Virus record (IMG/VR): IMGVR_UViG_3300033146_002768
Span: 1 to 64,000 of that record
Length of the DNA: 64,000 nucleotides
Direction: 5' to 3' (one strand)
Positions 34,301 to 51,122 of this stretch are shown here, one piece after another. The position numbers and the translations under genes are program-made. Under the pieces are notes generated by a model. It did no database searches and had not been told where the DNA came from. It saw only the letters and a list, made by a program, of their open reading frames with translations. The stretch's first letter is position 1. Every line of letters begins with the position of its first letter.

Positions 34301-34826
34301 AAAATATAATTATAAGTTTAATTGTAATATTTATTATGGTTAGTAATGTACAAGCAGCAGATTGTCTTTCTATAGGTGCTGGAAAAAGTGCTGGTATAAA
34401 AAAGACAGAAGATCATAAGAAAAATTTAAGTAAAGCTCATATGGGTAAAAAATTATCAGATGAACATAAAAAGAGTATAGGCGAATCATGTAAAGGTATA
34501 CTTGTTGGATCAAAGAACCCAATGTTTGGTAAGACTCATTCTCCAGAAGCTATTGAAAAAATGAGAGAAGCAAATCTTGGAGAAAATAATTATGGTTGGA
34601 AAGGTGGTAAAGGTACATATTTACATCAAAAAGCATGGGAAAAATTTGGTGTAGAATATTGTGAACATTGTGTGGTATAACCTTATTAGAATATAAACAA
34701 AATAATAAATGTAGACTTGAAATGCATTGCACATCTAATCCTAAAGATTATACTATATTGGAAAAATCTAACTGGATGTGTTTATGTAAAAAATGCCATA
34801 AAAAGGAGGAAAAAATTGAAAAATAA
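34297..34826 (+). pseudogene. NUMOD3/HNH-like endonuclease with an N-terminal signal peptide, frameshifted near 34670
   Basis: NUMOD3 repeats (GSKNPMFGKTHS). Removing 2 nt from TGTGTGG restores CEHCGITL...LEMHC...NWMCLCKKCH to TAA 34824-34826. Confidence 0.6.
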
Positions 34827-35865
34827 AATACAGATAATTTCATGGCTGCTGACCAGGCGCTGTAACTTATCTTGTGATTATTGTGCAATTGTAAAAGATT
34901 ATAAAAATAAACCTCAAAGTTATCCAGACATGAAACATTATTTTGAAAAGGAGATGAACTCAGAGTATGTAATTAAAACTTTAAGAAGAATTAAAAATCA
35001 TAATCCTGATGCTTTCCATATTTTTTATGGAGGTGAACCCTTACTCAGGAAAGACTTAGCGGATATTATTAACTTTTGTAATATTGCTAAAATTCATTAT
35101 ACAATCATTACAAATAATTCTGATGATATTCAAAAATTAATCGAAGAACTATTAGAAAATGTTGAGTATATTGAAGGTATAACATCATCAGTTGATCCTT
35201 TAATTATGGATAAAACTGCTGATAAGTCGAGTGATAGATATAAAAAATGTGTTGCTGGGCTTGAAAGGTTGCAAGGGTTTAAAGGTAAGATAAAAGATAT
35301 TGTTGCAGAGATAACAGTTGATAATAGCAACTTTCAATATTTATATGATTTAGTTAAAATGCTCACTGATATGGGGATTAACAGTGATATAACTACAGTT
35401 GATATTGCAAAGAATAATTATTATGATTTTTCAAATATTAGAAGTAATAAGAACGCTGACTTAGTTCCGAAGTTGCCAAGCACTATGGCAATGTTTCAAA
35501 AGATTATTAATGATAAATTAAATGTTCATATGGCTGAGACATTATTACCTCAGATATATGATATTCTACCAGCAGAATTAGATTGTGAATTAGAAAAAAA
35601 TATTCATAATATGACTATTGATGCTGATGGAAGCATGCGCATGTGTTTGAGAATTCGTGGAGTATTAACTCCTAACATGAAAGCATATGATTGCATTATG
35701 GATAATGGAGAATTGCACCCAATATTCAAAGAATTAATTAGTATTGACAAAAGAAATTATTGTTTGGGGTGCAATTGGAGTTGTCCAATTATGAGCCGTT
35801 TATTATTAAAAGGAGAAGATAATGTTGAATCTTTAGTCCATTATGAAACAAGAAATAAAAAATAA
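34816..35865 (+). CDS. Radical SAM protein
   Basis: AGGAGG RBS before TTG 34816; CNLSCDYC, GGEP, C-terminal Cys cluster (CLGCNWSC). Confidence 0.88.
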   Translation: MKNKIQIISWLLTRRCNLSCDYCAIVKDYKNKPQSYPDMKHYFEKEMNSEYVIKTLRRIKNHNPDAFHIFYGGEPLLRKDLADIINFCNIAKIHYTIITNNSDDIQKLIEELLENVEYIEGITSSVDPLIMDKTADKSSDRYKKCVAGLERLQGFKGKIKDIVAEITVDNSNFQYLYDLVKMLTDMGINSDITTVDIAKNNYYDFSNIRSNKNADLVPKLPSTMAMFQKIINDKLNVHMAETLLPQIYDILPAELDCELEKNIHNMTIDADGSMRMCLRIRGVLTPNMKAYDCIMDNGELHPIFKELISIDKRNYCLGCNWSCPIMSRLLLKGEDNVESLVHYETRNKK

Positions 35866-36923: not shown

Positions 36924-37232
36924 ATGGCAGAAGACAATGTATTATCAAGCGCCATTGACTTTTATCAAAAGATAAAAGCAGAGGATGAGGTTAGGATAAA
37001 ATTTAGAAAGTTAAGTGGTGAAGAAAGAATTATGAGATGCACCTTAGATTTTTCTAAAGTTCCAAATAATAAAAAACCTAAGGATGTAAATATAGGTAAA
37101 ATTCTAAAACTTGTCCAGGATCATAAGATGGTTCATGTATTTGATCTTGATATAGGTGATTGGAGAACTGTACCATTTGATAGAAGTGAATGGTTAGAAA
37201 CCGATACAGCAAGATTTAGAATAAAGAAATAA
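36924..37232 (+). CDS. WYL_2/SH3-like phage protein
   Basis: F.K.SGE.R.M.CTL ... V.VFDLD...WR. Confidence 0.7.
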   Translation: MAEDNVLSSAIDFYQKIKAEDEVRIKFRKLSGEERIMRCTLDFSKVPNNKKPKDVNIGKILKLVQDHKMVHVFDLDIGDWRTVPFDRSEWLETDTARFRIKK

Positions 37233-37242: not shown

Positions 37243-37602
37243 ATGTCAATTTTAAAAGATCTATTAAAGGAAGTTAAATCATTAAAATTAGATGAACAAC
37301 TTAGAGTTATTTGTGATGAAATTTTTAAAGAAGAGGTTCCTGATCCTGATGAATATGAAGGACCACAGGGAGCAAATATCTTTTTGTCAATTCCAGTTGT
37401 TATACCTCAAAATAAAAAACATGCACATTTTATTTGTTTAGAGAGGGAAGCTGCTGGAGCTTATATTGTTTCTTATTGGAGTAATTTAATTACTACAGAA
37501 GCACCTCCAAAAAGACATAAGGCATGGGACATAAAAAATGATGATCCACAAAAAATTTTAAAGGAGTTTGTCGAAAGACTACAATTTTTGAAAGGAGAAT
37601 AA
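37243..37602 (+). CDS. Hypothetical protein
   Basis: ORF with AAGGAG RBS. Confidence 0.6.
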   Translation: MSILKDLLKEVKSLKLDEQLRVICDEIFKEEVPDPDEYEGPQGANIFLSIPVVIPQNKKHAHFICLEREAAGAYIVSYWSNLITTEAPPKRHKAWDIKNDDPQKILKEFVERLQFLKGE

Positions 37603-37606: not shown

Positions 37607-40183
37607 GTGAATACAGATGAAGTTATTATAGGTCCTGATTATACAAGTATTATTGCTGGGAATGATGATGTACAAGGATTCCATAGAGACTTGAAAATCG
37701 GAGAAAAAACTGAAGTTCCATTTAATCCTTTATGTAGAAGAAGGACTATTAGAACAAGTGATTTTTATGCTAATTTGAAAAATAAAATTTCACCAACAAC
37801 TGAGGTTTTACCTGACGGATGTAAGTTTTTTGATATTAGCACAACTGGTAGTAAAATGTTTGTTATTGAGCAACCGCCAAACATTAGAACCATTAGGGTT
37901 GATATTGGGATAGAGCAGTTAATTGAAAAATTAAGATTAACTGGTAAATTAAAAGAATATGGATATGAGAATTATAAAAAAGATTTTAAAAGACATAAAG
38001 ACGGATATTATAATTTTCAACTTGCATTTCCATTTGTTGTTTTAATTATTGTATTAAATTCAAGAAATGAAATGTGCGAAATTCAACCATTCTTTAGAAC
38101 TACACCAGTTACAAGTGTATTAGATCATTTATATATAGCACCATTGTATAATGTTCCTACTGAACAAACGATGTGTATGGGGAGTGGTATTAGATCTTAC
38201 AATAGTATTTCCGAAACGATTGATAACATTGTTGAACATTTCTGGATAAATGTCTATAACCAAGATTATACAAACAACTTGACTAAATATGGAAAAACTG
38301 AAGAATACCGAGTTCATGATTATTTAACTTGGGCATACTTTACAAAACAAGATCCGATGTTTGTATTTGATGTCGACTGGATTCCATATCATTTAAAAAT
38401 AGTTGATATTTTAAACAATATTAATACGAAGAGAGGTAGAACAAATTCATCTCATGATTCATATAATAGTATTTTTGGATCGGCATTTGAAGCTACATCG
38501 ACAAGAAATAATACCAAAGCAATAGTTCATAATACAACATATTCAATGGCAATAAAACAGGGAGTCACAATAACTGTTGGTGATGAAATTTCATACAAAG
38601 ATGAAAAGATGTATTTATATTCAATTTTAGCTGATAAAAATGGTTCATATGCAGGAGTTGAACTTGAAAATGAAAAGGGTGAAATTGAACATATAGAGTT
38701 TAAAACTTTTGAGAAAAACTACAAAAATGCAATTAAAATTGTAAAACTCGATAAAGTTATTATAAACGGTAAGACGCTTAGCGAAGGGGATATTATTTCT
38801 TTTGATGTTCTTGGAAACACAGTTTATAAAACAGTTCAATCAATCAGACAAGCTAAAGATGGTAGATTGGAAGCACTGATGAATAATGATCACTATCTAA
38901 TTGATAATTTAAAATTTGATATATTCGATTCATCAGCAATAAAAATAAATGGCTTACCTATTGATAAGAAAGGCACGTATCATATGCTTGCTATTCAAGA
39001 CAGTAGCTGTCCTCTTTATCAAGTTTATGATTGTAAATTTCATTCACTTAGTGTTGGAAGTGGTAGTAGTATATCAATTAAATTTGAAGCAACAAATGGT
39101 AATATGTATTACTTGAATCATAAAAATCATTTAGCTGGAACATCTGAATATGAGTTTATCAATAATGATTTAATTGAAATTCCTCCAGTTTTAATGTGGT
39201 TTGATAAATTAATGACTAATAGAAAGGTAACTGAGTATAACGAACATTTTAAAATTATAAAGGGTCGTGGTATAAGTGTTGGTATTGGAATGAGAGTTAG
39301 AAGTTATTTTAATGGTGGTCAAGAGATATTAAAAACAATATTAATAGAAGACAATACTAGGTTACATATTCCAACTATTGGAACAGATATTGACTTTAGA
39401 GTTGGTGATCCAATTGTTTATGCTGGATGGAAAAATCCAGAAGATATGTTATTGATTTCTTCTATTACAAGATTTGAATATGATGAAAATCGGAATATGT
39501 TTTATGTTTATAGTATGACTTTGAATAAAAAGAAAGAGTTTAAAATTCCTTTTATTAATTTTGGAAATAATAGAGTTAATGTTGGAATTATTAGGAAAGT
39601 TACATCAAAATTTGGTACCTGGTCATCTGGTGATAAAATTATTGCTGAAACGCCTGGAGTAACTAACTTTCCTAAAAAGGATGTTAATACTATTATTGCT
39701 TTTATTGATGATGGTAATGTTAAATATCCATTAGCACTTTGTTCTAACTTATGTACTTTATGGATGAATGATGATACCATGAGCAAGTTTAAAGTACTTA
39801 AGTTTAAATCAGCACCATGGAAAAAAGTTGAGAGTAATTTATTTAATATAGAAAAAATTAAATATCAACATGGTGATATGTTTAGATCTACTCAATATAA
39901 TTTCTCATCTATTTATGTTGCTACAAAACGAAATGGATCAAGTTATGGAATGGATCTATCATATTGTAGTAATTATGGAACTATCGACAATGGAGGAGAA
40001 GCTAATAAAAGCTATCTAGATCGTTCTTTTATAAGATATGGAATTTTAACACCTCGATATGCAACTACATCTTCTCAAGCTTCCAAGATTTCACAAGGAT
40101 TCCCGAATATGTTAGGTGGATATTATTTTAACAAGTATGCAGGAACTTACTTTAGAAGTGATCAATTTAAGGAGGATTTTTAA
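37607..40183 (+). CDS. Prokaryotic E2 family D-like protein (PRTRC protein B-like) with a ~600-aa C-terminal extension
   Basis: FPF, HLYIAPLYNV...MCMG (Cys190), FW...YN; sits in a JAB/ThiF/Ubl context. Confidence 0.7.
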   Translation: MNTDEVIIGPDYTSIIAGNDDVQGFHRDLKIGEKTEVPFNPLCRRRTIRTSDFYANLKNKISPTTEVLPDGCKFFDISTTGSKMFVIEQPPNIRTIRVDIGIEQLIEKLRLTGKLKEYGYENYKKDFKRHKDGYYNFQLAFPFVVLIIVLNSRNEMCEIQPFFRTTPVTSVLDHLYIAPLYNVPTEQTMCMGSGIRSYNSISETIDNIVEHFWINVYNQDYTNNLTKYGKTEEYRVHDYLTWAYFTKQDPMFVFDVDWIPYHLKIVDILNNINTKRGRTNSSHDSYNSIFGSAFEATSTRNNTKAIVHNTTYSMAIKQGVTITVGDEISYKDEKMYLYSILADKNGSYAGVELENEKGEIEHIEFKTFEKNYKNAIKIVKLDKVIINGKTLSEGDIISFDVLGNTVYKTVQSIRQAKDGRLEALMNNDHYLIDNLKFDIFDSSAIKINGLPIDKKGTYHMLAIQDSSCPLYQVYDCKFHSLSVGSGSSISIKFEATNGNMYYLNHKNHLAGTSEYEFINNDLIEIPPVLMWFDKLMTNRKVTEYNEHFKIIKGRGISVGIGMRVRSYFNGGQEILKTILIEDNTRLHIPTIGTDIDFRVGDPIVYAGWKNPEDMLLISSITRFEYDENRNMFYVYSMTLNKKKEFKIPFINFGNNRVNVGIIRKVTSKFGTWSSGDKIIAETPGVTNFPKKDVNTIIAFIDDGNVKYPLALCSNLCTLWMNDDTMSKFKVLKFKSAPWKKVESNLFNIEKIKYQHGDMFRSTQYNFSSIYVATKRNGSSYGMDLSYCSNYGTIDNGGEANKSYLDRSFIRYGILTPRYATTSSQASKISQGFPNMLGGYYFNKYAGTYFRSDQFKEDF

Positions 40184-40184
40184 T

Positions 40185-41309
40185 ATGTTTCCAATTTGGA
40201 TGAATGATGGAGAAACAGAAATGCCGACAGACGATATATTTTATATCGTAGCGAAAGATGGAATTTATTTGAAGAAGAGTATGGGACATTTTGATACTGT
40301 ATCAAAAGTAGATGAAATCTCAATGCTCGGAGAATGTGAATCGTTTGCATTACTCCATGTATCAAAAATTACAACGAGACAATTTGCTCAGATCCTTACT
40401 TTATTTAGGGAGGTTTATAAAAAATATAAAGCAGAATGTAATGTAATTTTACATTATAACATCAAAAGAAAAAGATATAGAATTGAAGTACCTCGACAGG
40501 ACGTATCAGGAGCAAGTGTTGATTATGCAAATGGTGAAGAATCTTATAAAAATTATATAAGAATCGGAACTATTCATAGTCATGCTAATATGACAGCATT
40601 TCATTCAGGAACAGATCAGAGTGACGAAGAAGGTTGGGATGGATTACATATCACTCTTGGAAAGATGGATGAAGATTATTTTGAAATATCTTGTTCTGTT
40701 ATGTCAAGTGGTGAAAGATTCATGGTTAATCCAGAAGATTACATTGAAGGAGTTGAGCTTATTGAATATGAAGTTCAGCGAAGTTATAAAGTTTATTCGT
40801 GGGAGAAAGGAAAGCAAATTGAGAAACCCCTTGAAAGAAAACTGGGTTATATCACTAATGCCCCTGAGAAAGATTTATGTCATCCAAAGAAATGGATGGA
40901 CAATGTTGATAAACATATACCAAAAGCGGTATCTCGTTATGGTGGTTACAATTATGGACAGTATGGAATGTATGGACATAATTATGTACCTGGTATGTAT
41001 TCCAGTAGAAGATCAATAGAAAATTTCTATGATTATACAAATCCAAAAGGAGATGGTTTAACGGTTGGTCAAAATGCATTATTTTCTGATTTGGAAATCG
41101 GAGACGATGAATGGAATGCTTGTATTCAATGTCCTTATAAAGAACATAAAGTTGGTGCATTAATTGAATCATATTTGAAACAGGCAACAGAAGATGAATT
41201 AGCAGAAATGGGGTTATTTTATCTTGAACTTGCTGATGAAACAGACAATTCTTTTGATGTTAATGAAAATGGTATAGACATAAACAAAGGCACTCAAGCT
41301 AAAAAATAG
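40185..41309 (+). CDS. JAB/MPN metallopeptidase (PRTRC protein A-like deubiquitinase)
   Basis: AGGAGG RBS; N-terminal YIVAKDGIYL; upstream Glu (AEC); HSH...AFHSGTD..DE JAMM motif. Confidence 0.88.
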   Translation: MFPIWMNDGETEMPTDDIFYIVAKDGIYLKKSMGHFDTVSKVDEISMLGECESFALLHVSKITTRQFAQILTLFREVYKKYKAECNVILHYNIKRKRYRIEVPRQDVSGASVDYANGEESYKNYIRIGTIHSHANMTAFHSGTDQSDEEGWDGLHITLGKMDEDYFEISCSVMSSGERFMVNPEDYIEGVELIEYEVQRSYKVYSWEKGKQIEKPLERKLGYITNAPEKDLCHPKKWMDNVDKHIPKAVSRYGGYNYGQYGMYGHNYVPGMYSSRRSIENFYDYTNPKGDGLTVGQNALFSDLEIGDDEWNACIQCPYKEHKVGALIESYLKQATEDELAEMGLFYLELADETDNSFDVNENGIDINKGTQAKK

Positions 41310-41321
41310 GAGATTTAGAAT

Positions 41322-42002
41322 ATGAACATTGTAGTTATAGGATTGGGTGGAGTTGGATCTATACTTTGTGACAATTTAGCCAGATATTTAAATTACTCAG
41401 ATGACTTAAAAGCAACTGTTAATTTAATTGATGGTGATCACTTTGAAGCAAAGAATAGTATTAGACAAACATTTATTAGATTGGGTGACAAAGCTGCAGT
41501 CAAAAAGGCTGAATTAAGTCATAGATTTGATAACGTTAATTTTCTGGATTTCAATGAGTTTATCAATGAAGATAATGTAAGTGCATTGATTCCTGAAGAT
41601 TCAATTGTTTTTATATGTGTTGACAATCATATATCAAGAAAAGTTATTTCTGATCATTGTTCAACACTTCAAAATATTACTGTCGTATCTGGTGGAAATG
41701 AATATACAGATGGTAATGTGCAACTACATAAACGAGAAGGAGGTAAGAATGTCACTGCGTCATTAACGGAGTATCATCCAGAGATTGAGTACCCCGAGGA
41801 TCAATCTCCAGAAGATATGAGTTGTGAAGAGTTATCACACTCTGAGCCACAGCTATTGTTCACGAATTTAACCGTTGCAACAATAATGTGTTGGGTGTTC
41901 TATGCAATTCATAAAGGTGAAGATGTAACAAAATGTGGCGAAATTTATTTTGACATAACGTCAATGGCTACATTAGCGAAAAAGAGAAATTCTAGAATTT
42001 AA
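41322..42002 (+). CDS. ThiF/E1-like ubiquitin-activating enzyme
   Basis: GLGGVG, DGD...N..RQ, K, CVDN..SR, catalytic-type SCEE (Cys168), Q...N. Confidence 0.9.
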   Translation: MNIVVIGLGGVGSILCDNLARYLNYSDDLKATVNLIDGDHFEAKNSIRQTFIRLGDKAAVKKAELSHRFDNVNFLDFNEFINEDNVSALIPEDSIVFICVDNHISRKVISDHCSTLQNITVVSGGNEYTDGNVQLHKREGGKNVTASLTEYHPEIEYPEDQSPEDMSCEELSHSEPQLLFTNLTVATIMCWVFYAIHKGEDVTKCGEIYFDITSMATLAKKRNSRI

Positions 42003-42033
42003 CTTAAGAAAAAATTATTTAGGAGAATTAAAC

Positions 42034-42993
42034 ATGACTACCGAAACTATTGAAACTTTGAATACTAAAACAGTTGCACAGCTTAAAGACATCCTTAGAG
42101 CAAGAAAAATCGTTGGGATGTTCAAGAAACCCAAAGCAGTTATTATTAAAGCAATCGTTGATGCTGCTACTTCTGCATCAGTTGCATCTGCAAAACCTGC
42201 TATTAAATCTAAAGCTGCAGTACCTACAAAGATTACTGCTGCAAAATTTAATATGTCAAGTGTTATGACAAAACCCAATGCAAAACCTGGCGACAAAACT
42301 ACAACTACCATTCAGGTATCTTGTGGTGCTAACTCTGCAGATTTCCCTGTTACTGGAAAACCTGTTGGTGCTGTTCAGGAATTTCTTAAAGAAGTTCTTA
42401 ATATCGACAGACTCGCTGAGGGTCAGGTTGCTGGTAAACCTGTTGGTTCTGATTATATCTTGAAAGAAGGCGATGTACTTGAGTTCATCAAACCTGCTGG
42501 TCGTAAGGGTGCTGATGAAACTGCCACATCTCTTGATAAACTAACTGTTGTTGGACTTAAAGATATTCTAAGAGCCCGTAAAATTGTTGGATATTTTAAA
42601 GCTGGTAAAGCTGGAATCATTGCTGCTATCCTTGCTGATACTGCTGCAAAAGCTGATTTCCCTTCTACTGCACCTGCTGCTGTTAAAGCTAAAAATGCTG
42701 TACCTACAAAGATTACTGCAGCAAAATTTAACATGACAAGTGTTATGACAAAACCTAATGCAAAGGTTGGTGATAAAACCACAACTACCATTCAGGTATC
42801 TTGTGGTGCTAACTCTTCTGACTTCCCTGTTGTTGGTAAACCTGTTGGGGCAGTTCAGGAATTCCTTAAAGAAGTCTTGAATATTGATAGACTTGCTGAG
42901 GGTCAGGTTGCTGGTAAACCTGTAGGTTCTGATTATGTACTTGCAGAAGGTGATGTACTTGAGTTTATTAAACCTGCTGGTCGTAAAGGCTAG
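42034..42993 (+). CDS. Tandem (Rho_N-like domain, linker, ubiquitin-like domain) x2, each ending KPAGRKG
   Basis: Units at 42034-42510 and 42511-42990. L..KTV.QLK.I.R...I.G..K..K..II is a Rho_N/HeH pattern; the beta-grasp-like part ends EGDVLEFIKPAGRKG. Confidence 0.8.
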   Translation: MTTETIETLNTKTVAQLKDILRARKIVGMFKKPKAVIIKAIVDAATSASVASAKPAIKSKAAVPTKITAAKFNMSSVMTKPNAKPGDKTTTTIQVSCGANSADFPVTGKPVGAVQEFLKEVLNIDRLAEGQVAGKPVGSDYILKEGDVLEFIKPAGRKGADETATSLDKLTVVGLKDILRARKIVGYFKAGKAGIIAAILADTAAKADFPSTAPAAVKAKNAVPTKITAAKFNMTSVMTKPNAKVGDKTTTTIQVSCGANSSDFPVVGKPVGAVQEFLKEVLNIDRLAEGQVAGKPVGSDYVLAEGDVLEFIKPAGRKG

Positions 42994-43009
42994 TATTTAA
43001 AGTTGAATA

Positions 43010-43043
43010 AATTAAGGGGTGGGTTAATTCTCACCCCTTAATT
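43010..43043 (+). terminator. Stem-loop after the Ubl gene
   Basis: AATTAAGGGGTGGG-TTAATT-CTCACCCCTTAATT. Confidence 0.6.
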
Positions 43044-43055
43044 AAAAGGAGAATC

Positions 43056-43538
43056 ATGACTGATATAACTTTAATTGAAGAAACAGAAAAGTATTATCTT
43101 GGTGAAATTGATAATAAAGTAGTAAAGTTATTTAAAATTAATACAAAAGATATGGAGACTAAACGCCAAGAAGAATTGAATATACTTGCTGGATTTTTAG
43201 ATGATGAAAACATAATCAATTTATTAATTCAATGTGATCAAATTATAACTATGCCTCCAACAGTTGATGTTTATATGGAAGTATGCAATGTATTAATTAC
43301 AAGACTTAAAAATATTGAAGAAGAAATTTTAAATAAAGGAAATGCGAGAAACATTTGTTTTCAATATATAAAACAACTTGATCCTTCTTACTATGGAAAA
43401 GCTCAAACTTTTATGAAGAATATAAAATTCTTATATTCAGATTTAATTCAAATAATGAAGTTAATGGAACATAGAGGTTTAACTGATTATAAATTAAAAG
43501 ATACAGAACTTCTAAGTTTTGATAAAATTAAGTCTTGA
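43056..43538 (+). CDS. Hypothetical helical protein
   Basis: ORF with AAGGAG RBS. Confidence 0.6.
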   Translation: MTDITLIEETEKYYLGEIDNKVVKLFKINTKDMETKRQEELNILAGFLDDENIINLLIQCDQIITMPPTVDVYMEVCNVLITRLKNIEEEILNKGNARNICFQYIKQLDPSYYGKAQTFMKNIKFLYSDLIQIMKLMEHRGLTDYKLKDTELLSFDKIKS

Positions 43539-43587
43539 TTTATGAAATTGTATCATATATAATATGAAACAAATTGGAGTGAATGAA

Positions 43588-44463
43588 ATGTATAAACGAA
43601 TAGCAGTTATTGGAGTGGGGTCATTGGGAGGTTTCTTTGCTGAAAGCATTTCTAAGATTAAAGATTTACAAACATTAATATTAATAGATCCAGATTTCGT
43701 TGAGGAAAAGAATCTGAATAAATCTATTTATCGAAAAAGAGATATAGGAGTTTATAAAGTTTATGCTTTAAGATCAATTATTCGAGAAAAAAATGAGAAT
43801 TTGATTATCGAATCATCTCCTATTGAATATATTGAAAGAAAGATACAAATGCCTGAGGTTGATCTTGTTGTTGATTGCAGAGATGAAATTGTTAGTAGAT
43901 GTGGCGAAATAGATATTAGATTATATATTGCATATAGAACTCTAATTCTTGATTGTAAAAAGATTCATAAAGTTGAGAAATCGTTAGCGGGAAAATATAT
44001 TCATAATTTGAATATGTTTGAAATTTCATCAGTAGCAAATGCAGTTGCTCAATTAATATATTCAGGTAGAATAAAAGAATTTATTAATAAAGAAATTATT
44101 TATCAAATACCAGTAGATACATCTTTAAAAGATGCTAATGAATGTCTTGATGATTTTAATAATTGTCCTGATATAGTAGTAGATCATTATGCAGGGTCAG
44201 AAATTATTAGAAACCTTCATATAACTCTTCCAAAAATAGTTGAACTTAATAAAACAAAAGCGTTATCAATTATTGTTGGAGAAGCTGAATGTTTAAGTGT
44301 TGATGTTTTAACTGTTAAAAGAAATGAGATTTCTAAATATGGAGAAGCAGTTAAATACTTAACAGATTTAACTCAAAGTTTAGTGCCTCATAAAGAGTAT
44401 TACACAGTTAAAGTAAATAAGAAAGGATACATTGAGCTCTTACCTGAAACAGGAGCAGCATAA
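43588..44463 (+). CDS. Second, divergent ThiF/E1-like protein
   Basis: IAVIGVGSLGG, IDPDFVEEKNLNK, DIG.YKV, DLVVDCRD; the C-terminal half is unrecognised. Confidence 0.75.
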   Translation: MYKRIAVIGVGSLGGFFAESISKIKDLQTLILIDPDFVEEKNLNKSIYRKRDIGVYKVYALRSIIREKNENLIIESSPIEYIERKIQMPEVDLVVDCRDEIVSRCGEIDIRLYIAYRTLILDCKKIHKVEKSLAGKYIHNLNMFEISSVANAVAQLIYSGRIKEFINKEIIYQIPVDTSLKDANECLDDFNNCPDIVVDHYAGSEIIRNLHITLPKIVELNKTKALSIIVGEAECLSVDVLTVKRNEISKYGEAVKYLTDLTQSLVPHKEYYTVKVNKKGYIELLPETGAA

Positions 44464-44471
44464 GGAGGGCA

Positions 44472-44954
44472 ATGATAGAAGGAAAAGAGTATTTTAGATC
44501 TATTGATGTAATTAAACCAAGAATGGCTATATTTAAATATAAACATTATGATATCAAAAAATTACATCCAAACTATATTATTCGTGAATGGTATATTATA
44601 GTGAATAATAAAATAGATAAGATAATTGAAAATGTTATACTTGCTGATTGTTGGCATCCAAATGCTTGGAGTGAAGGTCCTGAAAATTATGGTATTAATA
44701 AACCTCCACAATTTTCTAGATATTGTTTGCCTAATGATGTGATTGGAGCAAAATTAGTAAGCAATGAATTGATGGAAAAGTATAGATGGAATAAAGAGAA
44801 AAGACCTTCATATGTAACTTATTCAAAAAGAATTATTGAGGAACATTTTTTAAAAATTTGGTCAATGGATGACCCACATCATTATCCATCAACAAAACAT
44901 ATAAATACTGAACCATCATTACCAAAGGAGATTGTGTATGAGCGATATATTTAG
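44472..44954 (+). CDS. Hypothetical protein, possibly E2/UBC-like
   Basis: WHPNA...YCLP...WSMDDP; HPN-to-Cys spacing is longer than canonical. Confidence 0.4.
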   Translation: MIEGKEYFRSIDVIKPRMAIFKYKHYDIKKLHPNYIIREWYIIVNNKIDKIIENVILADCWHPNAWSEGPENYGINKPPQFSRYCLPNDVIGAKLVSNELMEKYRWNKEKRPSYVTYSKRIIEEHFLKIWSMDDPHHYPSTKHINTEPSLPKEIVYERYI

Positions 44955-45288
44955 TGAAGAAATGGAGAAGGCGATAATTGATTTATTCAATAAAAGATTT
45001 AAACAATTAAAGATAGCCGAAATATTTGATACTCACGAAGATGTTTTAAAGGGTATTGAAAAAACTATTAAAAATGTAAAATCTGATGTTGAAGAAAATC
45101 ATGATGAAATTAGAGATTTACAAGATGAAATAGAGAATTATGTTAAACAAACCGACTTGGAAGAATTAGTTGGAAGATCGATGTTAAAATTAGTTCCAAG
45201 TTTTAATTTAAGAATAGCAAAGGAGGTAAAGTTTCATTTAGTGGCAATTGCCGGACTTATGCAAGAAACTTTTAAAGAAAAGGATTAA
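44938..45288 (+). CDS. Coiled-coil hypothetical protein
   Basis: AAGGAG RBS; heptad-rich. Confidence 0.6.
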   Translation: MSDIFSEEMEKAIIDLFNKRFKQLKIAEIFDTHEDVLKGIEKTIKNVKSDVEENHDEIRDLQDEIENYVKQTDLEELVGRSMLKLVPSFNLRIAKEVKFHLVAIAGLMQETFKEKD

Positions 45289-45290: not shown

Positions 45291-48011
45291 ATGCCAACAT
45301 TATTAAATTTTGAAGAATTTTGTGAAGATTTGAAAGAGATAACTACAACCAAGTATCTTAATAAAAAACAATTTCATCCAGAAGGATTGTTTTCAGAACA
45401 GATATTTGGTCCATCTAAAAACTATACATGCCAGTGTGGAACATATTGGGGAATTTCTGGATCAGGTGGTACTTGTGCAACATGTGAAGTTGATGTTGTA
45501 AATAGCAATGTTAGACGTAAAAGATTTGCTAAGATAATTCTACCAGTTCCAGTTGTTAATCCATTATTCTATGATCTTGTTTGTGATCTTGGCGGACGTC
45601 AGGTCAAAGCTGCTTTAGATCAACTCATGAAAGATGAGAATAGTATAATGATTTTTGATGAAGAAGAGCAAGAATGGCTTGTAGAAAAACAAGATCCAGA
45701 GAATATTGATAGAAATGCTTTAGTTGGAACAAATGCAATTCAAGTTTTGATTGAAGATTTGACTGATGCAGTATTAGCAGCAGGTGATACAACTTGGGAA
45801 GTTATTAAAGATAATATTGATCAATTGATTATAAGTCATGTTGTTGTTCTTCCTCCTGATTTAAGACCAGCTTCTAAAAAGGTTAGTCGAAAAGGTCAGG
45901 TATCATCTGATAAAATCAATAGATTTTATACTCAGATATTAACAAAGAAAGAAGCATTTGCTGAAACTAATTGTGATGTTAGAGTTGATAGAAATTTATA
46001 TTATAATTACTATCGACAATTACAAAAAGATGTTAATGAACTTTATGCATTTATACTTGAGAAAATGTCAAAAAAAGAAGGATTGATTCGTGGTAATATT
46101 CTTGGTAAGCGAATTGATTTCTCTGGTAGAGCAGTAATTGTTCCTGATCCAACTTTAAATATGGATCAATGTTCATTACCATACTTGATGTTTCTTGAAT
46201 TATTTAAGTTGAAAATTGCAAAGAAAATTATTGATCTTGGTAGATTTAAAAAGATTAATAATGCAATTGATTTTATTGATGATTGTATTGAGATTAATAA
46301 TCCTGTATTATTTAATACTTGTGAAGAGATTGCTGTAGATGAAGTATGTATTTTAAATCGTCAACCTTCTTTGCATAGATTAAGTTTATTGGGATACAGA
46401 ACCAAAGTTTCTTTAGATAAAGTTATTAAGATTCACCCTCTTTCATGTCCTCCATTTAATGCGGATTTTGATGGTGATCAAATGGCTGTATATATTCCAA
46501 TCAGTGAAGAAAGTAAACAAGAAGTATTAGATAGATTACTAGTTATTAGAAATCTAACTAACCCTTCAAATGGTAGTTTGTCAACCACACCAAGTCAAGA
46601 TGTTATACTTGGACTATATGCTGTGTCTCATGAAGTATTTGAAGATTTACAGTATGATGTTGAATGTAAAGGTAAAACGATTAAAGCTGATAGAGCTTTA
46701 TTGAATGATTGTTTTCCAGAAGATTATCCAGTTATTGATGAACATGTTGGCGGAAAAAGAATTAAAGAAATTTTAAGTGATATAAATTTCAGATATTCAA
46801 ATGAAATAACAGCAGATGTGTTGGATAAGATTAAGTTCCTTGGTTTTAAATACTCCACATTATTTGGAGCAACACTTTCATTAGATGAAATGTTCATAGA
46901 AGGTTGTTATGAAAAACGTGATTCATTATATGCGGGTGAAACAATAATGGAACAGTTAGAGATGGTATCTAATGATGAAACAACTCAATATCTTAGAGAT
47001 AATTTTAATTATGCTTATATGGTAGAGTCTGGTGCCAGAGGTAGTTGGGATCAGGTAAGACAGATAGTATTAACTCGAGGTTTCATCTCAAATTTTAGAG
47101 GTGAAATTATTGAAAGACCGATTAAACATAGTTTCATAAATGGTCTTACTCCTCAAGAGTTCTTTGATTCAACTAATGGTAGCCGTAAAGGATTACTTGA
47201 TGTTGCATTGAATACTGGTACATCTGGATATCTATCAAGAAAGTTAATCTTTACCTGCGCTAATCTTCAAATTGATAGAACATTTGATGATTGCGGAACA
47301 ACTGATCTTCTTCAAGTATTTGTTGATAATGAGAAGAAAGCTAAAATGTTAATCGGTAAACATTTTATGGAAAGTGGTAATCTTATTAAAATGACTGAGT
47401 ATAACTATCTTGGTTATGTTGGTAAGACAATTGAAATTAGAAGTCCTATATTTTGTAAAAATGATAAGGTTTGTAAAACTTGTTATGGTGAATTACATGA
47501 AGTAATTGATACTGATTTTATTGGGGTAATTGCAGCTCAGAGTCTTGGGGAATGTAATACTCAGTTGGTATTGAGAACTTTTCATACATCAGGTGTTGCA
47601 GTTGTTGGTAAGAATAATGAAGATGGTTCTAATGATATGAAACAACAGGATATTGTTGCTGATTTATCTACAGTATCAAAACTTCTTCATAAATTTCCAA
47701 AAGATACAACTCCAGCAGCTTTGGTTGCCAAATTATATACTTGTTATAACAGTAGTAGAACTATTCATCATGTTCATTTTGAATGTGTTGTGTCTCAGTT
47801 GATGTGGTTTGGTACTTCTAAATGGAGATTAGTTGACAATAGAGAGAATGTTGTACCTAAGTACCTTTCTGTTCAAACTGTCCCATCAAATGAAAGTTGG
47901 CTAATGGGATTAGCATTCTCTAATCCAAAGAAGCATATAATCAAGGGTATTTTAGAATCTGGTTTATATCATGGAGTTATGGATAAAATACTCTGTGGAG
48001 AAGAAGTTTAA
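45291..48011 (+). CDS. rpoC: RNA polymerase beta' subunit (set 2), intact
   Basis: GLFSEQIFG, CQCG..CATC, PP.LRP, GKRIDFSGR, NRQPSLH, NADFDGDQM, TSGYLSRKL, RTFH. Confidence 0.97.
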   Translation: MPTLLNFEEFCEDLKEITTTKYLNKKQFHPEGLFSEQIFGPSKNYTCQCGTYWGISGSGGTCATCEVDVVNSNVRRKRFAKIILPVPVVNPLFYDLVCDLGGRQVKAALDQLMKDENSIMIFDEEEQEWLVEKQDPENIDRNALVGTNAIQVLIEDLTDAVLAAGDTTWEVIKDNIDQLIISHVVVLPPDLRPASKKVSRKGQVSSDKINRFYTQILTKKEAFAETNCDVRVDRNLYYNYYRQLQKDVNELYAFILEKMSKKEGLIRGNILGKRIDFSGRAVIVPDPTLNMDQCSLPYLMFLELFKLKIAKKIIDLGRFKKINNAIDFIDDCIEINNPVLFNTCEEIAVDEVCILNRQPSLHRLSLLGYRTKVSLDKVIKIHPLSCPPFNADFDGDQMAVYIPISEESKQEVLDRLLVIRNLTNPSNGSLSTTPSQDVILGLYAVSHEVFEDLQYDVECKGKTIKADRALLNDCFPEDYPVIDEHVGGKRIKEILSDINFRYSNEITADVLDKIKFLGFKYSTLFGATLSLDEMFIEGCYEKRDSLYAGETIMEQLEMVSNDETTQYLRDNFNYAYMVESGARGSWDQVRQIVLTRGFISNFRGEIIERPIKHSFINGLTPQEFFDSTNGSRKGLLDVALNTGTSGYLSRKLIFTCANLQIDRTFDDCGTTDLLQVFVDNEKKAKMLIGKHFMESGNLIKMTEYNYLGYVGKTIEIRSPIFCKNDKVCKTCYGELHEVIDTDFIGVIAAQSLGECNTQLVLRTFHTSGVAVVGKNNEDGSNDMKQQDIVADLSTVSKLLHKFPKDTTPAALVAKLYTCYNSSRTIHHVHFECVVSQLMWFGTSKWRLVDNRENVVPKYLSVQTVPSNESWLMGLAFSNPKKHIIKGILESGLYHGVMDKILCGEEV

Positions 48012-48035
48012 ACGTAAATAATAGGAGAAAGAATT

Positions 48036-51000
48036 TTGACTATAGAAAATCCGATATATAAAGTTGGCGATGAAAGAAATCATATCTTTAGTATTCGACA
48101 GCAAGAGTATGCAGCTCTTTTGGAGAATGTACGACAGATACTGATCCCAGCAGAAGAATTAGGATTTGATCTAGTAGAATATAGATTGAAAGAGCCTAGA
48201 TTTTCAAACGGTGAAATTTGTAAAACAATTAAAAAGAACCTTATTATAAGGTTTCAGAAAGGTACCTCAAAGATTGATTTATCAATGCAAGTTCCTACAT
48301 TGATAAATGATAACTATATTGTTATTAACGGAAGACAGAAAATACCATTATTTCAGTTGTTCGATATTCCTATTGTTACAAGAGGGAAGAGTATTAAGAT
48401 AAGAACAAATGTTGCAACATTAATGATATTTCCACAAAAAGAAGCGCCATATATCTATATCAGCATTTTGGGTAGAAAAGTTCCTTTACACCTTATAATG
48501 TTTGGTTATTATGGAATTGAAGAAATGAATGAACGTTTTGGTCTATCTGATATGGCTGATGCGCCAATGGTTGATAATTTGGATCCAAAAGATCCAAGGT
48601 TACTTTATACAAAATTAATCTATGATTTAAAAATGTTTTATGATGATTCAAGAGGAATAACTCAAGATGATATCATAAAAGAGATTGGGAGAAATTATTC
48701 TCAATACAATGCTAAATCTAAAGGTGAAGATATAATTTATGCTATAGATTTAATTTTGAAAGTAGATCCTATTTCAGCCGAGTTCTTTGAAACTGGAAAT
48801 CTCCTTGATGAAATTGTTAAAACATTAGATGATGGTTATCTTGATGATACTCTTTTGACGAATAAAAGAATTAGATGTTTTGAATATGTTGTATTAGCAA
48901 AAATATCCAAAGCAGTATTTGATATGTGTATGTCAAATAGAACAGCAAGACAACCTAAATTCAATGTTAACTCAACTATGATATTATCTGAGTGTAATGT
49001 ATCTGACATTGTCCAATTTGATTTTGCTATAAATCCAATTGATGAATTAACTAAGTTAAGCAGGACTAGTTTAGTTGGTCCTGGAGGTTTTAATCGACAG
49101 AATGTCCCAGAACATTTAAGGGATATTATGCCAAGTATGTTTGGTAGGTTGTGTCCTGTAGATACTCCTGATAGAGATAATTGTGGTGTTCTACAAAATT
49201 TGATTCCAAATGTTCCTCTTGATGATAATGGTAGATTTAATGAATATTATCTTGAGAAACAACCTATATCAATTCCAGTATCTTTAGTACCATTTCTGGA
49301 ACATGATGACCAGACAAGATTACAAATGGCATCTTCACAAATGAGACAAGCAATTATGTTACAAAACTTTGACCAACCAATGATTAAATCTGGTTGTGAA
49401 AGTTTATATACTAAATATACTCAGTTTGTTAAGATTGCAAAGAAATCCGGAAAAGTTATACATCTGGATAGTAATTACATTATCGCTTTATACGATGATA
49501 AAACAATTGATATATTTGATGTTACATATAGAAAAATCTATATATCAAATTTAGATGTATTTAATGTATATGTTAAACATGGTGACAAATTTAATGCTGG
49601 AGATATTTTAGCAGAAAGTAATTTTTGTAAAGATGGTAGCATTAATATTGGAAAAAATCTTCTAACTGCAGTTATGGTTTATTATGGCTACAATTATGAG
49701 GATGGAATTATCATATCAGAGAGACTTCAGAAAGAAGGGGTTTTCACATCTGTTCATTTTGAGGATATGTCGTTTGATATTCCAATGAGTAAAGTTCTTC
49801 TAACTTTAGATGATAAAGGAAGTTATATGCCGATTCCTAAAGTTGGAGATAGAATTGCTAAAGGACAACCTTATGCAATTATGAAAGAATTTCCAAATCA
49901 ACAAATGGACTTCTTTGATATATTTAAAGAAGAACAGAAGAAACTATCCAAACAAAATGTTATTATTACTGAGGTTAATTTATATGTGAATCAATGGTGC
50001 ACAGATATACCTCAGTACAATGATTGGGTTGAAAAAATCATTAAGGAACAACAAGATGAAGAGTTAAAAATTAAGATTATAATTGAAGAAAATCTTGAAA
50101 AAGATAAGGTCAAGAATTTCATCAAACAAAATAATCTTGACTTGTTTGATAACGTAGGAAAATTTAAAATGAAGGGTGAAGAAATCCCTGGTATTAGAGT
50201 TGAAATGTTTGGAATCTTTTTTAGACCTATTCAGATTGGGGATAAAATAGGCAACAGACATGGTAATAAAGGTGTAATTTCAAATATTATACCTCATGAG
50301 AAAATGCCAATGTTACCCGATGGAAGACATGCTGACATAATTGTAAATCCTTTAGGTACTATTTCAAGGATGAATGTTGGGCAATTGTTTGAATATCATA
50401 TGGGGATGTCTTTATATGATCTTAAAGTTCATATGAAAAAGATTATTAAAAAAGAAGATGAATCAGTTAAAGCTCATAGCTTATCTGAAAATCAAATTCA
50501 ATTACTTGTTAAAGAATATGTTATTGGTTATATAAATATTATTGATAACTCAGATGATAAATGGTATCTTGAACAATTTGAGGAACAATTGCCAGATGTA
50601 ATTGATGAAAAATGGATAGAAGAATTGTCTATTATTCAACCTCCATTTGAGTCAGTAAATATGATTAAAATAAGAGAAGCATTGTCTTATACAGGTACTC
50701 AATTTAAGTATGATATTTTTGATCCTCAATCTGATAAAATGATTCAACAACAAATAGCTTGTGGTTATGGTTATTTCTTTAAGATGGTTCATATTTCCGA
50801 AACACGATTAGCTGCAAGAGGTATTGGGTCATATGCAAGAAAGACTCTGCAACCATTAGCTGGTCGTAAGAATAAAGGTGGTCAAAGATGTGGTGAAATG
50901 GAAACTGCTGCATTAATTGGACATGGAGCTGTTGTTAATTTAAGAGAATTTTTAACAACTAAATCTGATTGTATTGATCTTAAAAATAGATATATTAGAG

Positions 51001-51122
51001 ATCAATTAGATTCTAATTTGGGTAAGGTTGATGATGAAGCTGAAGAAGATTCTATTGTTCCAGAATCAGTTAAACTATTACATGCAAATTTAATTGCATT
51101 AGGATTAAAAAGAGAGGATTAA
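48036..51122 (+). CDS. rpoB: RNA polymerase beta subunit (set 2)
   Basis: CPVDTPD, QMRQA, GYNYEDG, GDKIGNRHGNKG, SRMNVGQ, GGQRCGEME. Confidence 0.96.
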   Translation: MTIENPIYKVGDERNHIFSIRQQEYAALLENVRQILIPAEELGFDLVEYRLKEPRFSNGEICKTIKKNLIIRFQKGTSKIDLSMQVPTLINDNYIVINGRQKIPLFQLFDIPIVTRGKSIKIRTNVATLMIFPQKEAPYIYISILGRKVPLHLIMFGYYGIEEMNERFGLSDMADAPMVDNLDPKDPRLLYTKLIYDLKMFYDDSRGITQDDIIKEIGRNYSQYNAKSKGEDIIYAIDLILKVDPISAEFFETGNLLDEIVKTLDDGYLDDTLLTNKRIRCFEYVVLAKISKAVFDMCMSNRTARQPKFNVNSTMILSECNVSDIVQFDFAINPIDELTKLSRTSLVGPGGFNRQNVPEHLRDIMPSMFGRLCPVDTPDRDNCGVLQNLIPNVPLDDNGRFNEYYLEKQPISIPVSLVPFLEHDDQTRLQMASSQMRQAIMLQNFDQPMIKSGCESLYTKYTQFVKIAKKSGKVIHLDSNYIIALYDDKTIDIFDVTYRKIYISNLDVFNVYVKHGDKFNAGDILAESNFCKDGSINIGKNLLTAVMVYYGYNYEDGIIISERLQKEGVFTSVHFEDMSFDIPMSKVLLTLDDKGSYMPIPKVGDRIAKGQPYAIMKEFPNQQMDFFDIFKEEQKKLSKQNVIITEVNLYVNQWCTDIPQYNDWVEKIIKEQQDEELKIKIIIEENLEKDKVKNFIKQNNLDLFDNVGKFKMKGEEIPGIRVEMFGIFFRPIQIGDKIGNRHGNKGVISNIIPHEKMPMLPDGRHADIIVNPLGTISRMNVGQLFEYHMGMSLYDLKVHMKKIIKKEDESVKAHSLSENQIQLLVKEYVIGYINIIDNSDDKWYLEQFEEQLPDVIDEKWIEELSIIQPPFESVNMIKIREALSYTGTQFKYDIFDPQSDKMIQQQIACGYGYFFKMVHISETRLAARGIGSYARKTLQPLAGRKNKGGQRCGEMETAALIGHGAVVNLREFLTTKSDCIDLKNRYIRDQLDSNLGKVDDEAEEDSIVPESVKLLHANLIALGLKRED

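Follow-up and report, generated by a model that had tools for sequence, protein, structure and literature searches.

A predicted ubiquitin-like conjugation gene module in an uncultivated jumbo phage

Gene sets combining an E1, an E2 and a JAB peptidase have been studied in bacteria as anti-phage systems. Bil (BilABCD) and CBASS Cap2/Cap3 use E1, E2 and JAB chemistry on a ubiquitin-like protein (Ubl) or a protein C-terminus, and the JAB both matures and deconjugates (PMC10557695, PMC11601596, PMC10097602). The PRTRC system (ParB-related, ThiF-related cassette; NCBIfam TIGR03735-03742), with Pfam Prok-E2_D and Prok-JAB, is carried by mobile genetic elements and its function is unknown. In phages, the pairing of a Ubl with a JAB peptidase was predicted for tail-assembly proteins I (Ubl) and K (JAB + NlpC/P60) of Lambda/T1 (PMC1779556). 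JAMM-trimmed sulfur carriers, CysO/Mec+ and QbsE/QbsD, are established. The locus examined here carries genes that look like a complete ubiquitin-style protein-tagging kit (tag precursor, activating enzyme, conjugating enzyme and trimming protease) as a fixed part of the core genome of a large uncultivated phage. Such kits have so far been studied as weapons against phages and not as phage equipment. No published description of the module was found.

Gene content of the module

The sequence analyzed, hereafter called the window, comprises 64,000 nucleotides (positions 1 to 64,000) of IMG/VR record IMGVR_UViG_3300033146_002768. Seven tightly packed, co-oriented genes (A to G) occupy positions 37607-44954, with gaps of 0-63 nt between them. 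The features of the module and its surroundings are as follows.

34717..35865 (+), radical-SAM gene
36924..37232 (+), WYL_2 (Sm/SH3-like) gene
37243..37602 (+), gene for an unknown 119-aa protein
37607..40183 (+), gene A, 858 aa, E2-like N-domain (about aa 40-275, nt 37724-38431; Cys190 codon 38174-38176) followed by about 560 aa of predicted Tudor/SH3/KOW-like beta-barrels
40185..41309 (+), gene B, 374 aa, JAMM/MPN+ metallopeptidase with a conserved N-terminal domain and a variable, Cys-containing acidic tail
41322..42002 (+), gene C, 226 aa, compact, active-looking E1 (ThiF/MoeB fold) without zinc-site cysteines
42034..42993 (+), gene D, 319 aa, head-to-tail di-Ubl precursor (unit 1, 42034-42510; unit 2, 42511-42990)
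43056..43538 (+), gene E, 160 aa, variable positional gene of unknown function
43564..44463 (+), gene F, 299 aa, second E1-fold protein, probably non-catalytic
44472..44954 (+), gene G, 160 aa, small HPN...Cys protein, possible mini-E2 (unproven)
44932..45288 (+), gene H, 118 aa, small acidic, coiled-coil-like protein of unknown role
45291..48011 (+), beta-prime-like RNA polymerase gene
48036..51122 (+), beta-like RNA polymerase gene

The initial annotation had described this block as a complete E2, JAB, E1, poly-Ubl, second E1 and possible second E2 cluster next to an RNA polymerase, and the observation held up. All six ORFs it named are present on the + strand at the positions it gave, and gene E is an additional ORF that it had not named. 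The likely start of gene B is the ATG at 40185 rather than the GTG at 40116. One correction concerns the poly-Ubl, which here means exactly two units; all 50 or so close relatives have one unit. The motifs were confirmed and are more than chance, since the residues concerned are invariant or nearly so in 36-74 orthologues at 20-50% identity.

Protein A contains PLYNV followed, after eight residues, by C190-M-G. Pfam Prok-E2_D scored 1.9e-4 on the full protein and 3.4e-5 on the domain alone, and 10 of 24 diverse relatives of this domain hit Prok-E2_D and nothing else (best 5.5e-7). Asn182 and Cys190 are invariant in 52 sequences and near-invariant across phage, CPR (candidate phyla radiation) and megaphage versions. 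An AlphaFold2 (AF2) model (pLDDT 84) showed the topology helix, beta-meander, loop bearing the Asn and Cys, then helices, with the C-terminal two thirds modeled as Tudor/SH3-like barrels. These barrels hold a second conserved patch (aa 688-757: D702, C712, S713, N714, Q754, G756, D757). The top Foldseek hits were UBE2O (7un3, the best), SPT5 and the SETDB1/UHRF1 Tudor domains. A UBC fold for the N-domain was not demonstrated: profile searches of the PDB found nothing, the Foldseek top 50 for the full-length model lists no UBC-domain-only entry, and the UBE2O hit probably comes from the barrels.

Protein B carries the intact JAMM motif H-S-H-x7-S-x2-D and matched Prok-JAB at 6.9e-4 and PRTRC_A at 3.7e-7. 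Residues E84, H131, H133, S141 and D144 are invariant, and across 74 sequences including CPR versions they are at least 90% conserved. It is predicted to mature the Ubl and to remove it from targets. Protein C contains G-L-G-G-V-G, C-V-D-N and S-C168-E-E and matched Pfam ThiF at 3e-17; its best NCBIfam model was PRTRC_ThiF at 1e-12. Every ATP-binding residue is present, and GxGGxG, D37/D39, N45, R48-Q49, K57, D101-N102 and C168 are at least 90% conserved in 74 sequences. Profile hits in the PDB were AclA, MoeB, ThiF, Uba4 and UBA5. The closest solved relative by sequence is AclA (9egb), deposited "in complex with substrate", narrowly ahead of MoeB; no paper describing it was found.

Each unit of protein D comprises a Rho_N/SAP-like helix-hairpin domain, an Ala/Lys-rich linker and a ThiS/TGS-like domain ending R-K-G. 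Pfam returned TGS at 1e-7, SAP at 4e-6 and ThiS at 7e-5, and Rho_N and TGS were each hit in 5 of 11 orthologues. Support for a beta-grasp fold is limited to the last 28 or so residues of each unit, and the fold was not demonstrated. The terminal xKG is conserved, although about 30% of orthologues carry 1-8 extra residues after the Gly. The two units are 78% identical at the DNA level.

Protein F matched ThiF at 4e-12 and PADLOC E1-E2 models at 2e-12. Its AF2 model (pLDDT 92) hit Uba4, UBA5, MccB, ThiF, MoeB and Cap2 in Foldseek at about 1e-8, and the E1 fold is predicted with confidence. Across 51 sequences it keeps the Gly loop, D42, K65 and the DCRD motif, and its C-terminus is conserved as E-T-G-A-A, but it lacks the Arg (the Arg finger) of the N-x-x-R-Q motif and has no conserved loop Cys. 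It is therefore unlikely to be a second activating enzyme. Protein G has invariant P16, H62, N64 and C85. Its family was found by position and clustering, and its 44 database homologues are all unannotated. No Pfam family was found for it, and PDB profile hits to UBC enzymes reached only E 0.2-1, so that its proposed identity as a second E2 rests only on the HPN...C motif. Gene E gave no family hit, and the genes at this position fall into two or three sequence clusters. The family of gene H is often present in two copies in relatives.

Conservation and distribution

The module is not an accessory island. All 57 related viral contigs found through the neighboring rpoC gene alone carry it, with gene G present in 56 of the 57 loci. 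Upstream, the WYL_2 gene (3.8e-6), the 119-aa gene and the radical-SAM gene (Radical_SAM, 1.8e-13) are syntenic with the module in the main clade and are present in 57, 53 and 54 of the 57 loci, respectively. The radical-SAM gene is syntenic in the main clade only, and is absent next to the core in loci L011, L072 and L073, in CPR bacteria and in Bacillus phages. The RNA polymerase genes directly downstream were identified from Pfam Rpb2 domains and from tblastn matches to phage rpoC at 26-31% identity. Adjacency to rpoC/rpoB is conserved in this clade only, not in the Bacillus phages, CPR bacteria or the megaphage contig.

The four-gene core (E2, JAB, E1 and Ubl) stays together in very different contexts, namely the main clade, a 527-kb contig, CPR MAGs, a Paceibacterota (CPR) chromosome, Firmicutes jumbo phages including cultured Bacillus jumbo phages, and the jumbo prophage pBtic235, which has 4-5 Ubl units. 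In different lineages the Ubl units are arrayed 2, 4 or 5 times head to tail, which requires endoproteolytic release.

Proposed function and alternatives

The explanation favored here, with moderate confidence, is a phage-encoded Ubl conjugation system, distantly related to the PRTRC/Prok-E2_D cassettes and fixed as a core module of a large clade of jumbo phages. In this view gene D is translated as a two-unit precursor that B would cut after each R-K-G, freeing units with a C-terminal glycine. Protein C would adenylate that glycine with ATP and take it onto Cys168, and may work paired with the degenerate protein F as a heterodimer in the manner of eukaryotic E1s. The Ubl would then pass to Cys190 of A, where Asn182 sits eight residues upstream, the same spacing as the HPN Asn and the Cys of UBC enzymes. 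The Tudor/SH3-like barrels would select the target, making A an E2/E3 hybrid in the style of UBE2O, and the Ubl would be joined to a target lysine, from which B could also remove it. Because the Ubl carries a Rho_N/SAP-type nucleic-acid-binding head, the tag probably works on or near DNA or RNA, although nothing in the data points to a target. What the analysis establishes is the gene set, the conserved catalytic residues, the E1 folds, the modeled barrel architecture, and the conservation and distribution of the module; every chemical step, the pairing of C with F, the role of G and the targets are inferred.

The interpretation given in the initial annotation is supported in part. E1, JAMM, Cys-bearing E2-like and Gly-ended Ubl genes do sit together in one operon-like phage block, PRTRC/Prok-E2_D are the nearest models for three of the components, no ParB is present, and no rhodanese or desulfurase was found among the window ORFs scanned. 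Its match to PRTRC-type cassettes, its second E1, its second E2, the UBC and beta-grasp folds, its suggestion of counter-defense and the adjacency to rpoC/rpoB, conserved in this clade only, were not supported or were weaker than stated.

Four other readings were considered. It is unlikely, though possible, that the Ubl is a ThiS/MoaD-type sulfur carrier, trimmed by the JAMM peptidase, adenylated by the E1 and converted to a thiocarboxylate that donates sulfur to a phage-specific modified nucleotide or cofactor. The only significant similarities of the C-terminal part of D are to ThiS and TGS, C resembles MoeB, ThiF and Uba4, and a radical-SAM gene is syntenic in the main clade. However, an E2-like protein with an invariant Cys, which sulfur carriers do not need, accompanies the E1 in every lineage; no rhodanese, cysteine desulfurase or PP-loop sulfurtransferase was found among the window ORFs scanned; units end in K-G rather than G-G; tandem Ubl precursors are typical of conjugated tags; and the radical-SAM gene is absent next to the core outside the main clade. 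A peptide-modifying (RiPP-like) pathway, with C as an MccB/PaaA/AclA-type enzyme adenylating a peptide C-terminus and the D units as multi-core precursors cut out by the peptidase, is very unlikely. The best PDB sequence match of C is AclA (9egb-d), with MccB and PaaA also listed, the precursor is repetitive and a radical-SAM gene lies nearby, but the units are conserved domains of 58-160 aa with ThiS/TGS-like ends, not short peptides, C at only 226 aa lacks the N-terminal peptide-clamp domain of MccB, and the E2-like Cys protein has no role in such pathways.

A morphogenetic role, as proposed for lambda proteins I and K, is also doubtful. The Ubl would be a processed structural or scaffolding protein, possibly cross-linked into the particle by the E1/E2 pair. 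Universal presence in the clade is as expected of an essential function, and the poly-Ubl of Bacillus phage vB_BceM_WH1 (gp211) is annotated "virion structural protein", on a basis that is unknown, and lies near another such gene. Against this, the same four genes sit between MreC/PBP2 and housekeeping genes in a Paceibacterota chromosome, where no virion is made, and the neighbors in the window are transcription and DNA-metabolism genes, not structural genes. Nor does it seem likely that the cascade or its peptidase exists mainly to neutralize host Ubl-based immunity (Bil, CBASS Cap2/Cap3, Bub), for example by stripping host conjugates or mis-tagging host factors. Bacterial E1/E2/JAB systems act in anti-phage defense and F matches PADLOC Cap2-type E1-E2 models, but presence in 57 of 57 loci with fixed synteny is unlike accessory anti-defense genes, a chromosomal CPR version exists, A, B, D and G gave no significant PADLOC hits, and a peptidase alone would be enough to strip conjugates.

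Comparison with described systems

Bil and CBASS Cap2/Cap3 share the E1, E2 and JAB chemistry proposed here, but they are host defense islands that act against phages, whereas this is a phage core module. PADLOC gave only BilD at E 0.0095 for C and E1-only matches to Cap2 models for F, and there is no CD-NTase and no E1-E2 fusion. The lambda/T1 proteins likewise pair a phage-encoded Ubl with a JAB peptidase, but that system has no E1 or E2 and its genes sit in the tail module, while here an E1, an E2-like protein and a second E1-fold protein lie beside the RNA polymerase genes. The ThiS/MoaD-ThiF/MoeB systems with JAMM trimming share a ThiS-like C-terminal strand motif and terminal Gly, a ThiF-type E1 with a loop Cys and a JAMM peptidase. 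They differ in that here an E2-like Cys protein is always present, no sulfur-donor genes were found and the precursors are tandem.

The eukaryotic machinery is similar in architecture only. Polyubiquitin precursors, heterodimeric E1s such as SAE1/SAE2 and the E2/E3 hybrid UBE2O correspond to the head-to-tail Ubl precursor, the active plus degenerate E1-fold proteins, the Asn-x8-Cys spacing and an E2 joined to SH3/Tudor-like substrate-binding barrels. The domain order is reversed relative to UBE2O, units end in K-G and not G-G, no sequence similarity to UBC was detectable, and the C-F pairing is conjecture.

The closest system is PRTRC, which has the same four kinds of protein: an E2-like protein with a conserved Cys, a JAMM peptidase, a compact ThiF-type E1 and a small Gly-ended Ubl. 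PRTRC_A, PRTRC_B, PRTRC_ThiF and Prok-E2_D were the best-scoring models. All PRTRC and Prok-E2_D/Prok-JAB scores are below curated cut-offs, those for PRTRC far below the trusted values (47.9 vs 144.75, 29.9 vs 101.8, 11.9 vs 131.45), and there is no ParB and no match to PRTRC_C, E or F, so this module is a distant relative and not a PRTRC member. Here the E2 is fused to about 560 aa of barrels and the Ubl to a Rho_N/SAP head, a second E1-fold protein and an HPN-Cys protein are added, and the host is a lytic-type jumbo phage clade rather than a plasmid or ICE.

Gene content and arrangement of the locus

The window has about 29% G+C, and every ORF of 150 amino acids or more lies on the + strand. 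Between 37607 and 45288 eight ORFs follow one another with gaps of 0-63 nt, so that the gene cluster proposed in the initial annotation is indeed present. The genes are designated A to H:

A, 37607-40183, + strand, E2-like protein with a long C-terminal barrel region
B, 40185 (likely start) to 41309, + strand, JAMM peptidase
C, 41322-42002, + strand, ThiF-family E1
D, 42034-42993, + strand, predicted ubiquitin-like protein (Ubl) precursor
E, 43056-43538, + strand, no family match
F, 43564-44463, + strand, second ThiF-family protein
G, 44472-44954, + strand, small protein with an HPN...Cys motif, no family match
H, 44932-45288, + strand, small protein

Gene H ends 3 nt before a beta-prime-like RNA polymerase gene (45291-48011), which is followed by a beta-like gene (48036-51122). 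The window contains two separate sets of multisubunit RNA polymerase genes: a beta-prime fragment and a 1366-aa beta-like protein upstream (1602-2807, 9127-13227), and the 906-aa beta-prime-like and 1028-aa beta-like pair (45291-51122) downstream of the module. Also encoded are a split topoisomerase II, SbcC, three radical-SAM proteins (6739-8070, 34717-35865 and 60353-61396, the last with a SPASM domain), a FolE2 GTP cyclohydrolase (51824-52669) and an RtcB ligase (58168-59301); the radical-SAM, FolE2 and RtcB proteins may serve in nucleotide or RNA modification and repair. A MoxR-like AAA ATPase gene is followed by a DUF2201 metallopeptidase/VWA gene (18566-21240), a known gene pair. A GIY-YIG (LEM-3-like) homing-endonuclease gene (35843-36826) is inserted between the radical-SAM and WYL_2 genes and is absent at this position in most relatives; further homing endonucleases lie at 13276-14370 (NUMOD3) and 21227-22060 (HNH). 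The window belongs to a 207-kb IMG/VR contig, and its gene content is that of a jumbo phage. A blastn search of the cluster against 50,697 phage records found no match at the DNA level. A scan for promoters and terminators gave counts equal to those of shuffled sequence and defines no operon boundaries.

Sequence and structure analysis of the encoded proteins

Orthologues were collected from 72 viral loci and 18 metagenome-assembled genome (MAG) contigs. Protein C is a ThiF-family E1 (Pfam, E 3e-17; 62.9 bits against a threshold of 28.1). Its Gly loop, Asp37/Asp39, Asn45, Arg48-Gln49, Lys57, Asp101-Asn102 and Cys168 are at least 90% conserved in 74 sequences, although a role of Cys168 in thioester formation is inferred from this conservation alone. 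The closest solved sequence relative of C is "AclA from Tenacibaculum discolor in complex with substrate" (PDB 9egb/9egc/9egd, released 2025), for which no accessible paper was found. Protein B matches Prok-JAB (E 6.9e-4) with 19.9 bits, below the gathering threshold of 25, but its full JAMM signature (Glu ... H-x-H-x7-S-x2-D; Glu84, His131, His133, Ser141 and Asp144) is invariant among the orthologues aligned and at least 90% conserved in 74 sequences. A profile search of the PDB with the JAB returned nothing or noise. The tail of the peptidase varies from about 300 to 620 aa and in long versions, for example at 8213-9994 of the related locus L007 and 7413-8717 of the related locus L009, carries several CxxC zinc-ribbon-like pairs, while the window copy has only one N-x-C-x2-C element.

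Protein A matches Prok-E2_D (PF14460) with E 1.9e-4 and 21.7 bits over the full length and E 3.4e-5 and 24.1 bits for the domain alone, below the gathering threshold of 25 bits. Ten of 24 diverse relatives of this domain independently match Prok-E2_D at E<=0.01 (best 5.5e-7) and match no other family. Conservation of Cys190 had been named beforehand as a test of the E2 assignment, and both Asn182 and Cys190 proved invariant in 52 full-length sequences at 20-48% identity and near-invariant when candidate phyla radiation (CPR) and megaphage versions were added, with the same Asn-x8-Cys spacing in the Bacillus-phage versions. The AlphaFold2 model of A (pLDDT 84) shows residues of about 40-275 as a helix, a beta-meander, a long loop carrying Asn182 and Cys190, and then helices, which is the order of elements in UBC enzymes. 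Residues of about 310-858 are predicted to form a string of small beta-barrels, for which the best Foldseek matches are UBE2O (an E2/E3 hybrid with SH3-like domains), SPT5, and the SETDB1/UHRF1 tandem Tudor domains. The Foldseek list for the full-length model was dominated by the barrels, with no UBC-domain-only entry in the top 50, and the UBE2O match most likely reflects the barrels; PDB profile searches with the E2 domain returned nothing or noise, and a search of BFVD returned only uncharacterised phage proteins. A UBC fold of the N-domain is therefore consistent with the model but not proven. A second highly conserved patch lies within the barrel region (aa 688-757, window 39668-39877; F688, P689, K690, K691, D702, C712 at about 85%, S713, N714, Q754, G756 and D757) and may be a second active site or a binding site. 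The possibility that A is a fusion of the E2 with the 526-aa protein that sits beside it in Bacillus phages is not supported, since hhalign of the barrel region against that protein showed no relation.

Each unit of protein D has a Rho_N/SAP-like head, an Ala/Lys-rich linker and a ThiS/TGS-like end finishing K-P-A-G-R-K-G. The two-unit protein matches SAP, and matches TGS (32.4 bits) and ThiS (23.7 bits) above the Pfam thresholds, but the TGS and ThiS matches align only the last 28 or so residues of each unit; single units match TGS with E 0.003-0.005, and a PDB profile search was not significant. Sequence support for a beta-grasp is thus limited to this C-terminal stretch. In orthologues D matches Rho_N, and TGS in 5 of 11. 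All relatives end in xKG, with about 30% carrying one to eight further residues, most often a single Cys, and CPR versions show the same pattern. The window alone has two units in tandem (78% DNA identity, both intact), whereas prophage pBtic235 and Bacillus phages WH1, Edson and KLEB27-3 have four or five bare units of about 58 aa, each ending A-G-T-K-G. The poly-Ubl gene has five units in Bacillus phage vB_BceM_WH1 (gp211; locus L094, 2664-3563) and four in pBtic235 (locus L093, 1870-2619). Such precursors can only yield free Gly ends by cleavage, which fits the always-adjacent JAMM peptidase. In L007 the Ubl gene (10699-11080) appears frameshifted, with a 101-aa ORF and the ThiS-like end in another frame. 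ORFs upstream of A in the loci L008, L019, L027 and L069 were considered as extra Ubl genes, but they have only the Rho_N/SAP head with acidic tails and no Ubl end.

Protein F is a second ThiF-family member (E 4e-12). Its predicted structure (pLDDT 92) matches Uba4, UBA5, MccB, ThiF, MoeB and Cap2 at about 1e-8, so it has the E1 fold. However, the Arg of the N-x-x-R-Q motif is replaced, mostly by Asn (Lys in the window copy), and the only conserved Cys is in the DCRD motif. The window protein ends in E-T-G-A-A, part of a strongly conserved tail, [P/E]-E-T-G-[A/G/S]-A, in 51 orthologues. This tail resembles a Ubl or CD-NTase-type C-terminus and could be a substrate or an active-site plug.

Neither E nor G matches any family. 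Clustering of genes by position showed that G belongs to a conserved family, in which Pro16, His62, Asn64 and Cys85 are invariant in 36 sequences. The motif resembles the UBC active site, but UQ_con is matched by only 1 of 36 members (E 0.075), PDB matches to UBC enzymes have E 0.2-1.1 and stand alongside unrelated proteins, and hhalign against the E2 domain of A gives a probability of 7%. Enlarging the profile from 36 to 66 sequences did not bring the UBC matches to significance, and the 44 database homologues carry no annotation, so that G remains only a possible E2.

Distribution of the module

A profile of the A N-domain finds 2,199 clusters at 50% identity (1,169 below 1e-10), of which the best 150 are mostly 820-900 aa. 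In viral contigs the order radical-SAM, WYL_2, unknown, A, B, C, D, (E), F, G, (H), rpoC, rpoB is repeated in about 50 distinct contigs of up to 277 kb. To avoid circularity the clade was sampled again through rpoC alone; all 57 loci with at least 8 kb upstream carry A, B, C, D and F, and G is present in 56 of the 57. The four-gene core (E2, JAB, E1, Ubl) travels without the other genes in four settings:

A 527-kb viral contig (locus L072, 8150-13476), with two tandem standalone E2-like paralogues (363 and 406 aa), then JAB, E1 and a 108-aa Ubl, and a sigma-70 family gene immediately upstream
MAG contigs of CPR phyla
A 957-kb scaffold of a Paceibacterota MAG (locus L082, 8012-10937), with E2-like, JAB, E1 and 86-aa Ubl genes among housekeeping genes, between MreC/PBP2, an H+-pyrophosphatase and a class II tRNA synthetase, which suggests a cellular version in CPR bacteria
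Firmicutes jumbo phages and phage-plasmids, among which the KLEB27-3 peptidase had already been labelled "PRTRC_A domain-containing" by its depositor

Interpretation and comparison with known systems

The data best fit a cycle of Ubl maturation, activation, transfer and removal of the PRTRC/Prok-E2_D type, which this phage clade has elaborated and uses as a core function. The reading of the cluster as a conjugation system in the initial annotation is therefore supported in part, although the match to PRTRC-type cassettes that it drew does not extend to membership. The E1 folds of C and F, the conserved residues and the distribution of the genes rest on the analysis itself, whereas every chemical step and the view of F as a non-catalytic E1 paralogue, possibly the partner of C, are inferred. 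A sulfur-carrier role is weakened by the ever-present Cys-bearing E2-like protein, the absence of sulfur-donor genes among the window ORFs scanned and the tandem precursors, and a counter-defence role by the universality of the module and the chromosomal CPR copy. A morphogenetic role is not excluded, as the poly-Ubl of WH1 is annotated by its depositors as a virion structural protein, although the basis of that annotation is not known. Nothing in the data points to a target, and adjacency to the RNA polymerase genes is clade-specific and may only reflect shared timing of expression.

A more far-reaching hypothesis, considered unlikely on present evidence, is that a whole clade of jumbo phages depends on its own ubiquitin-like cascade for infection. 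In this view the cascade would have convergently acquired eukaryote-like features, namely a polyubiquitin-style precursor, an active/inactive E1 heterodimer (C and F) and an E2/E3 hybrid with Tudor/SH3 substrate readers, and would covalently attach a nucleic-acid-binding (Rho_N/SAP) tag to phage or host proteins on DNA or on the transcription machinery. If so, protein "ubiquitination" would be an essential viral process in prokaryotic viruses, and the related four-gene core would be a cellular tagging system in CPR bacteria.

The 2006 survey of prokaryotic Ubl systems describes related operon types and the lambda I/K pair, but not this one (PMC1779556). Two broad jumbo-phage overviews do not mention Ubl, E1 or JAB genes (PMC7824862, PMC13282480), nor does the pBtic235 study (PMC9700832). 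Literature searches on PRTRC, on Ubl, JAB or ThiF proteins of jumbo phages, on phage-encoded ubiquitin-like systems and on the PDB entries 9EGB-D found no description of this system in papers that are not behind subscription. The module gives the uncharacterised PRTRC/Prok-E2_D branch of prokaryotic Ubl systems its first genetically tractable hosts, in the form of cultured Bacillus jumbo phages and the inducible jumbo prophage pBtic235, and makes it possible to ask what a phage tags with its own ubiquitin-like protein.

Membership of PRTRC proper, Bil, CBASS and Bub was rejected because their defining features were not found. Among the NCBIfam models PRTRC_ThiF (TIGR03736) is the best for C, but the score of 47.9 bits (E 1.1e-12) is far below the cut-off of 144.75. 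Protein B scores 29.9 bits with PRTRC_A (E 3.7e-7; cut-off 101.8) and A only 11.9 bits with PRTRC_B (cut-off 131.45). No ParB and no PRTRC_C, E or F match was found for proteins A-G scanned against NCBIfam, or for the cluster proteins and their neighbours scanned against Pfam. Of the Bil components (BilABCD) in PADLOC, only BilD was matched, by C with E 0.0095, and A, B and D gave no match. F and C match only the E1 part of the PADLOC E1-E2 models (for F the Cap2-type models, E 2e-12), and there is no nucleotidyltransferase in the cluster, in contrast to the E2-E1 fusion with a CD-NTase partner of type II CBASS (Cap2/Cap3). Ubl conjugation in prokaryotes has recently been shown to work as anti-phage immunity in Bil, CBASS Cap2 and Bub, whereas here the same kind of machinery, as inferred from sequence, is found on the virus side, with eukaryote-like elaborations and as a fixed core module of a very large uncultivated jumbo-phage clade, not a sporadic accessory.
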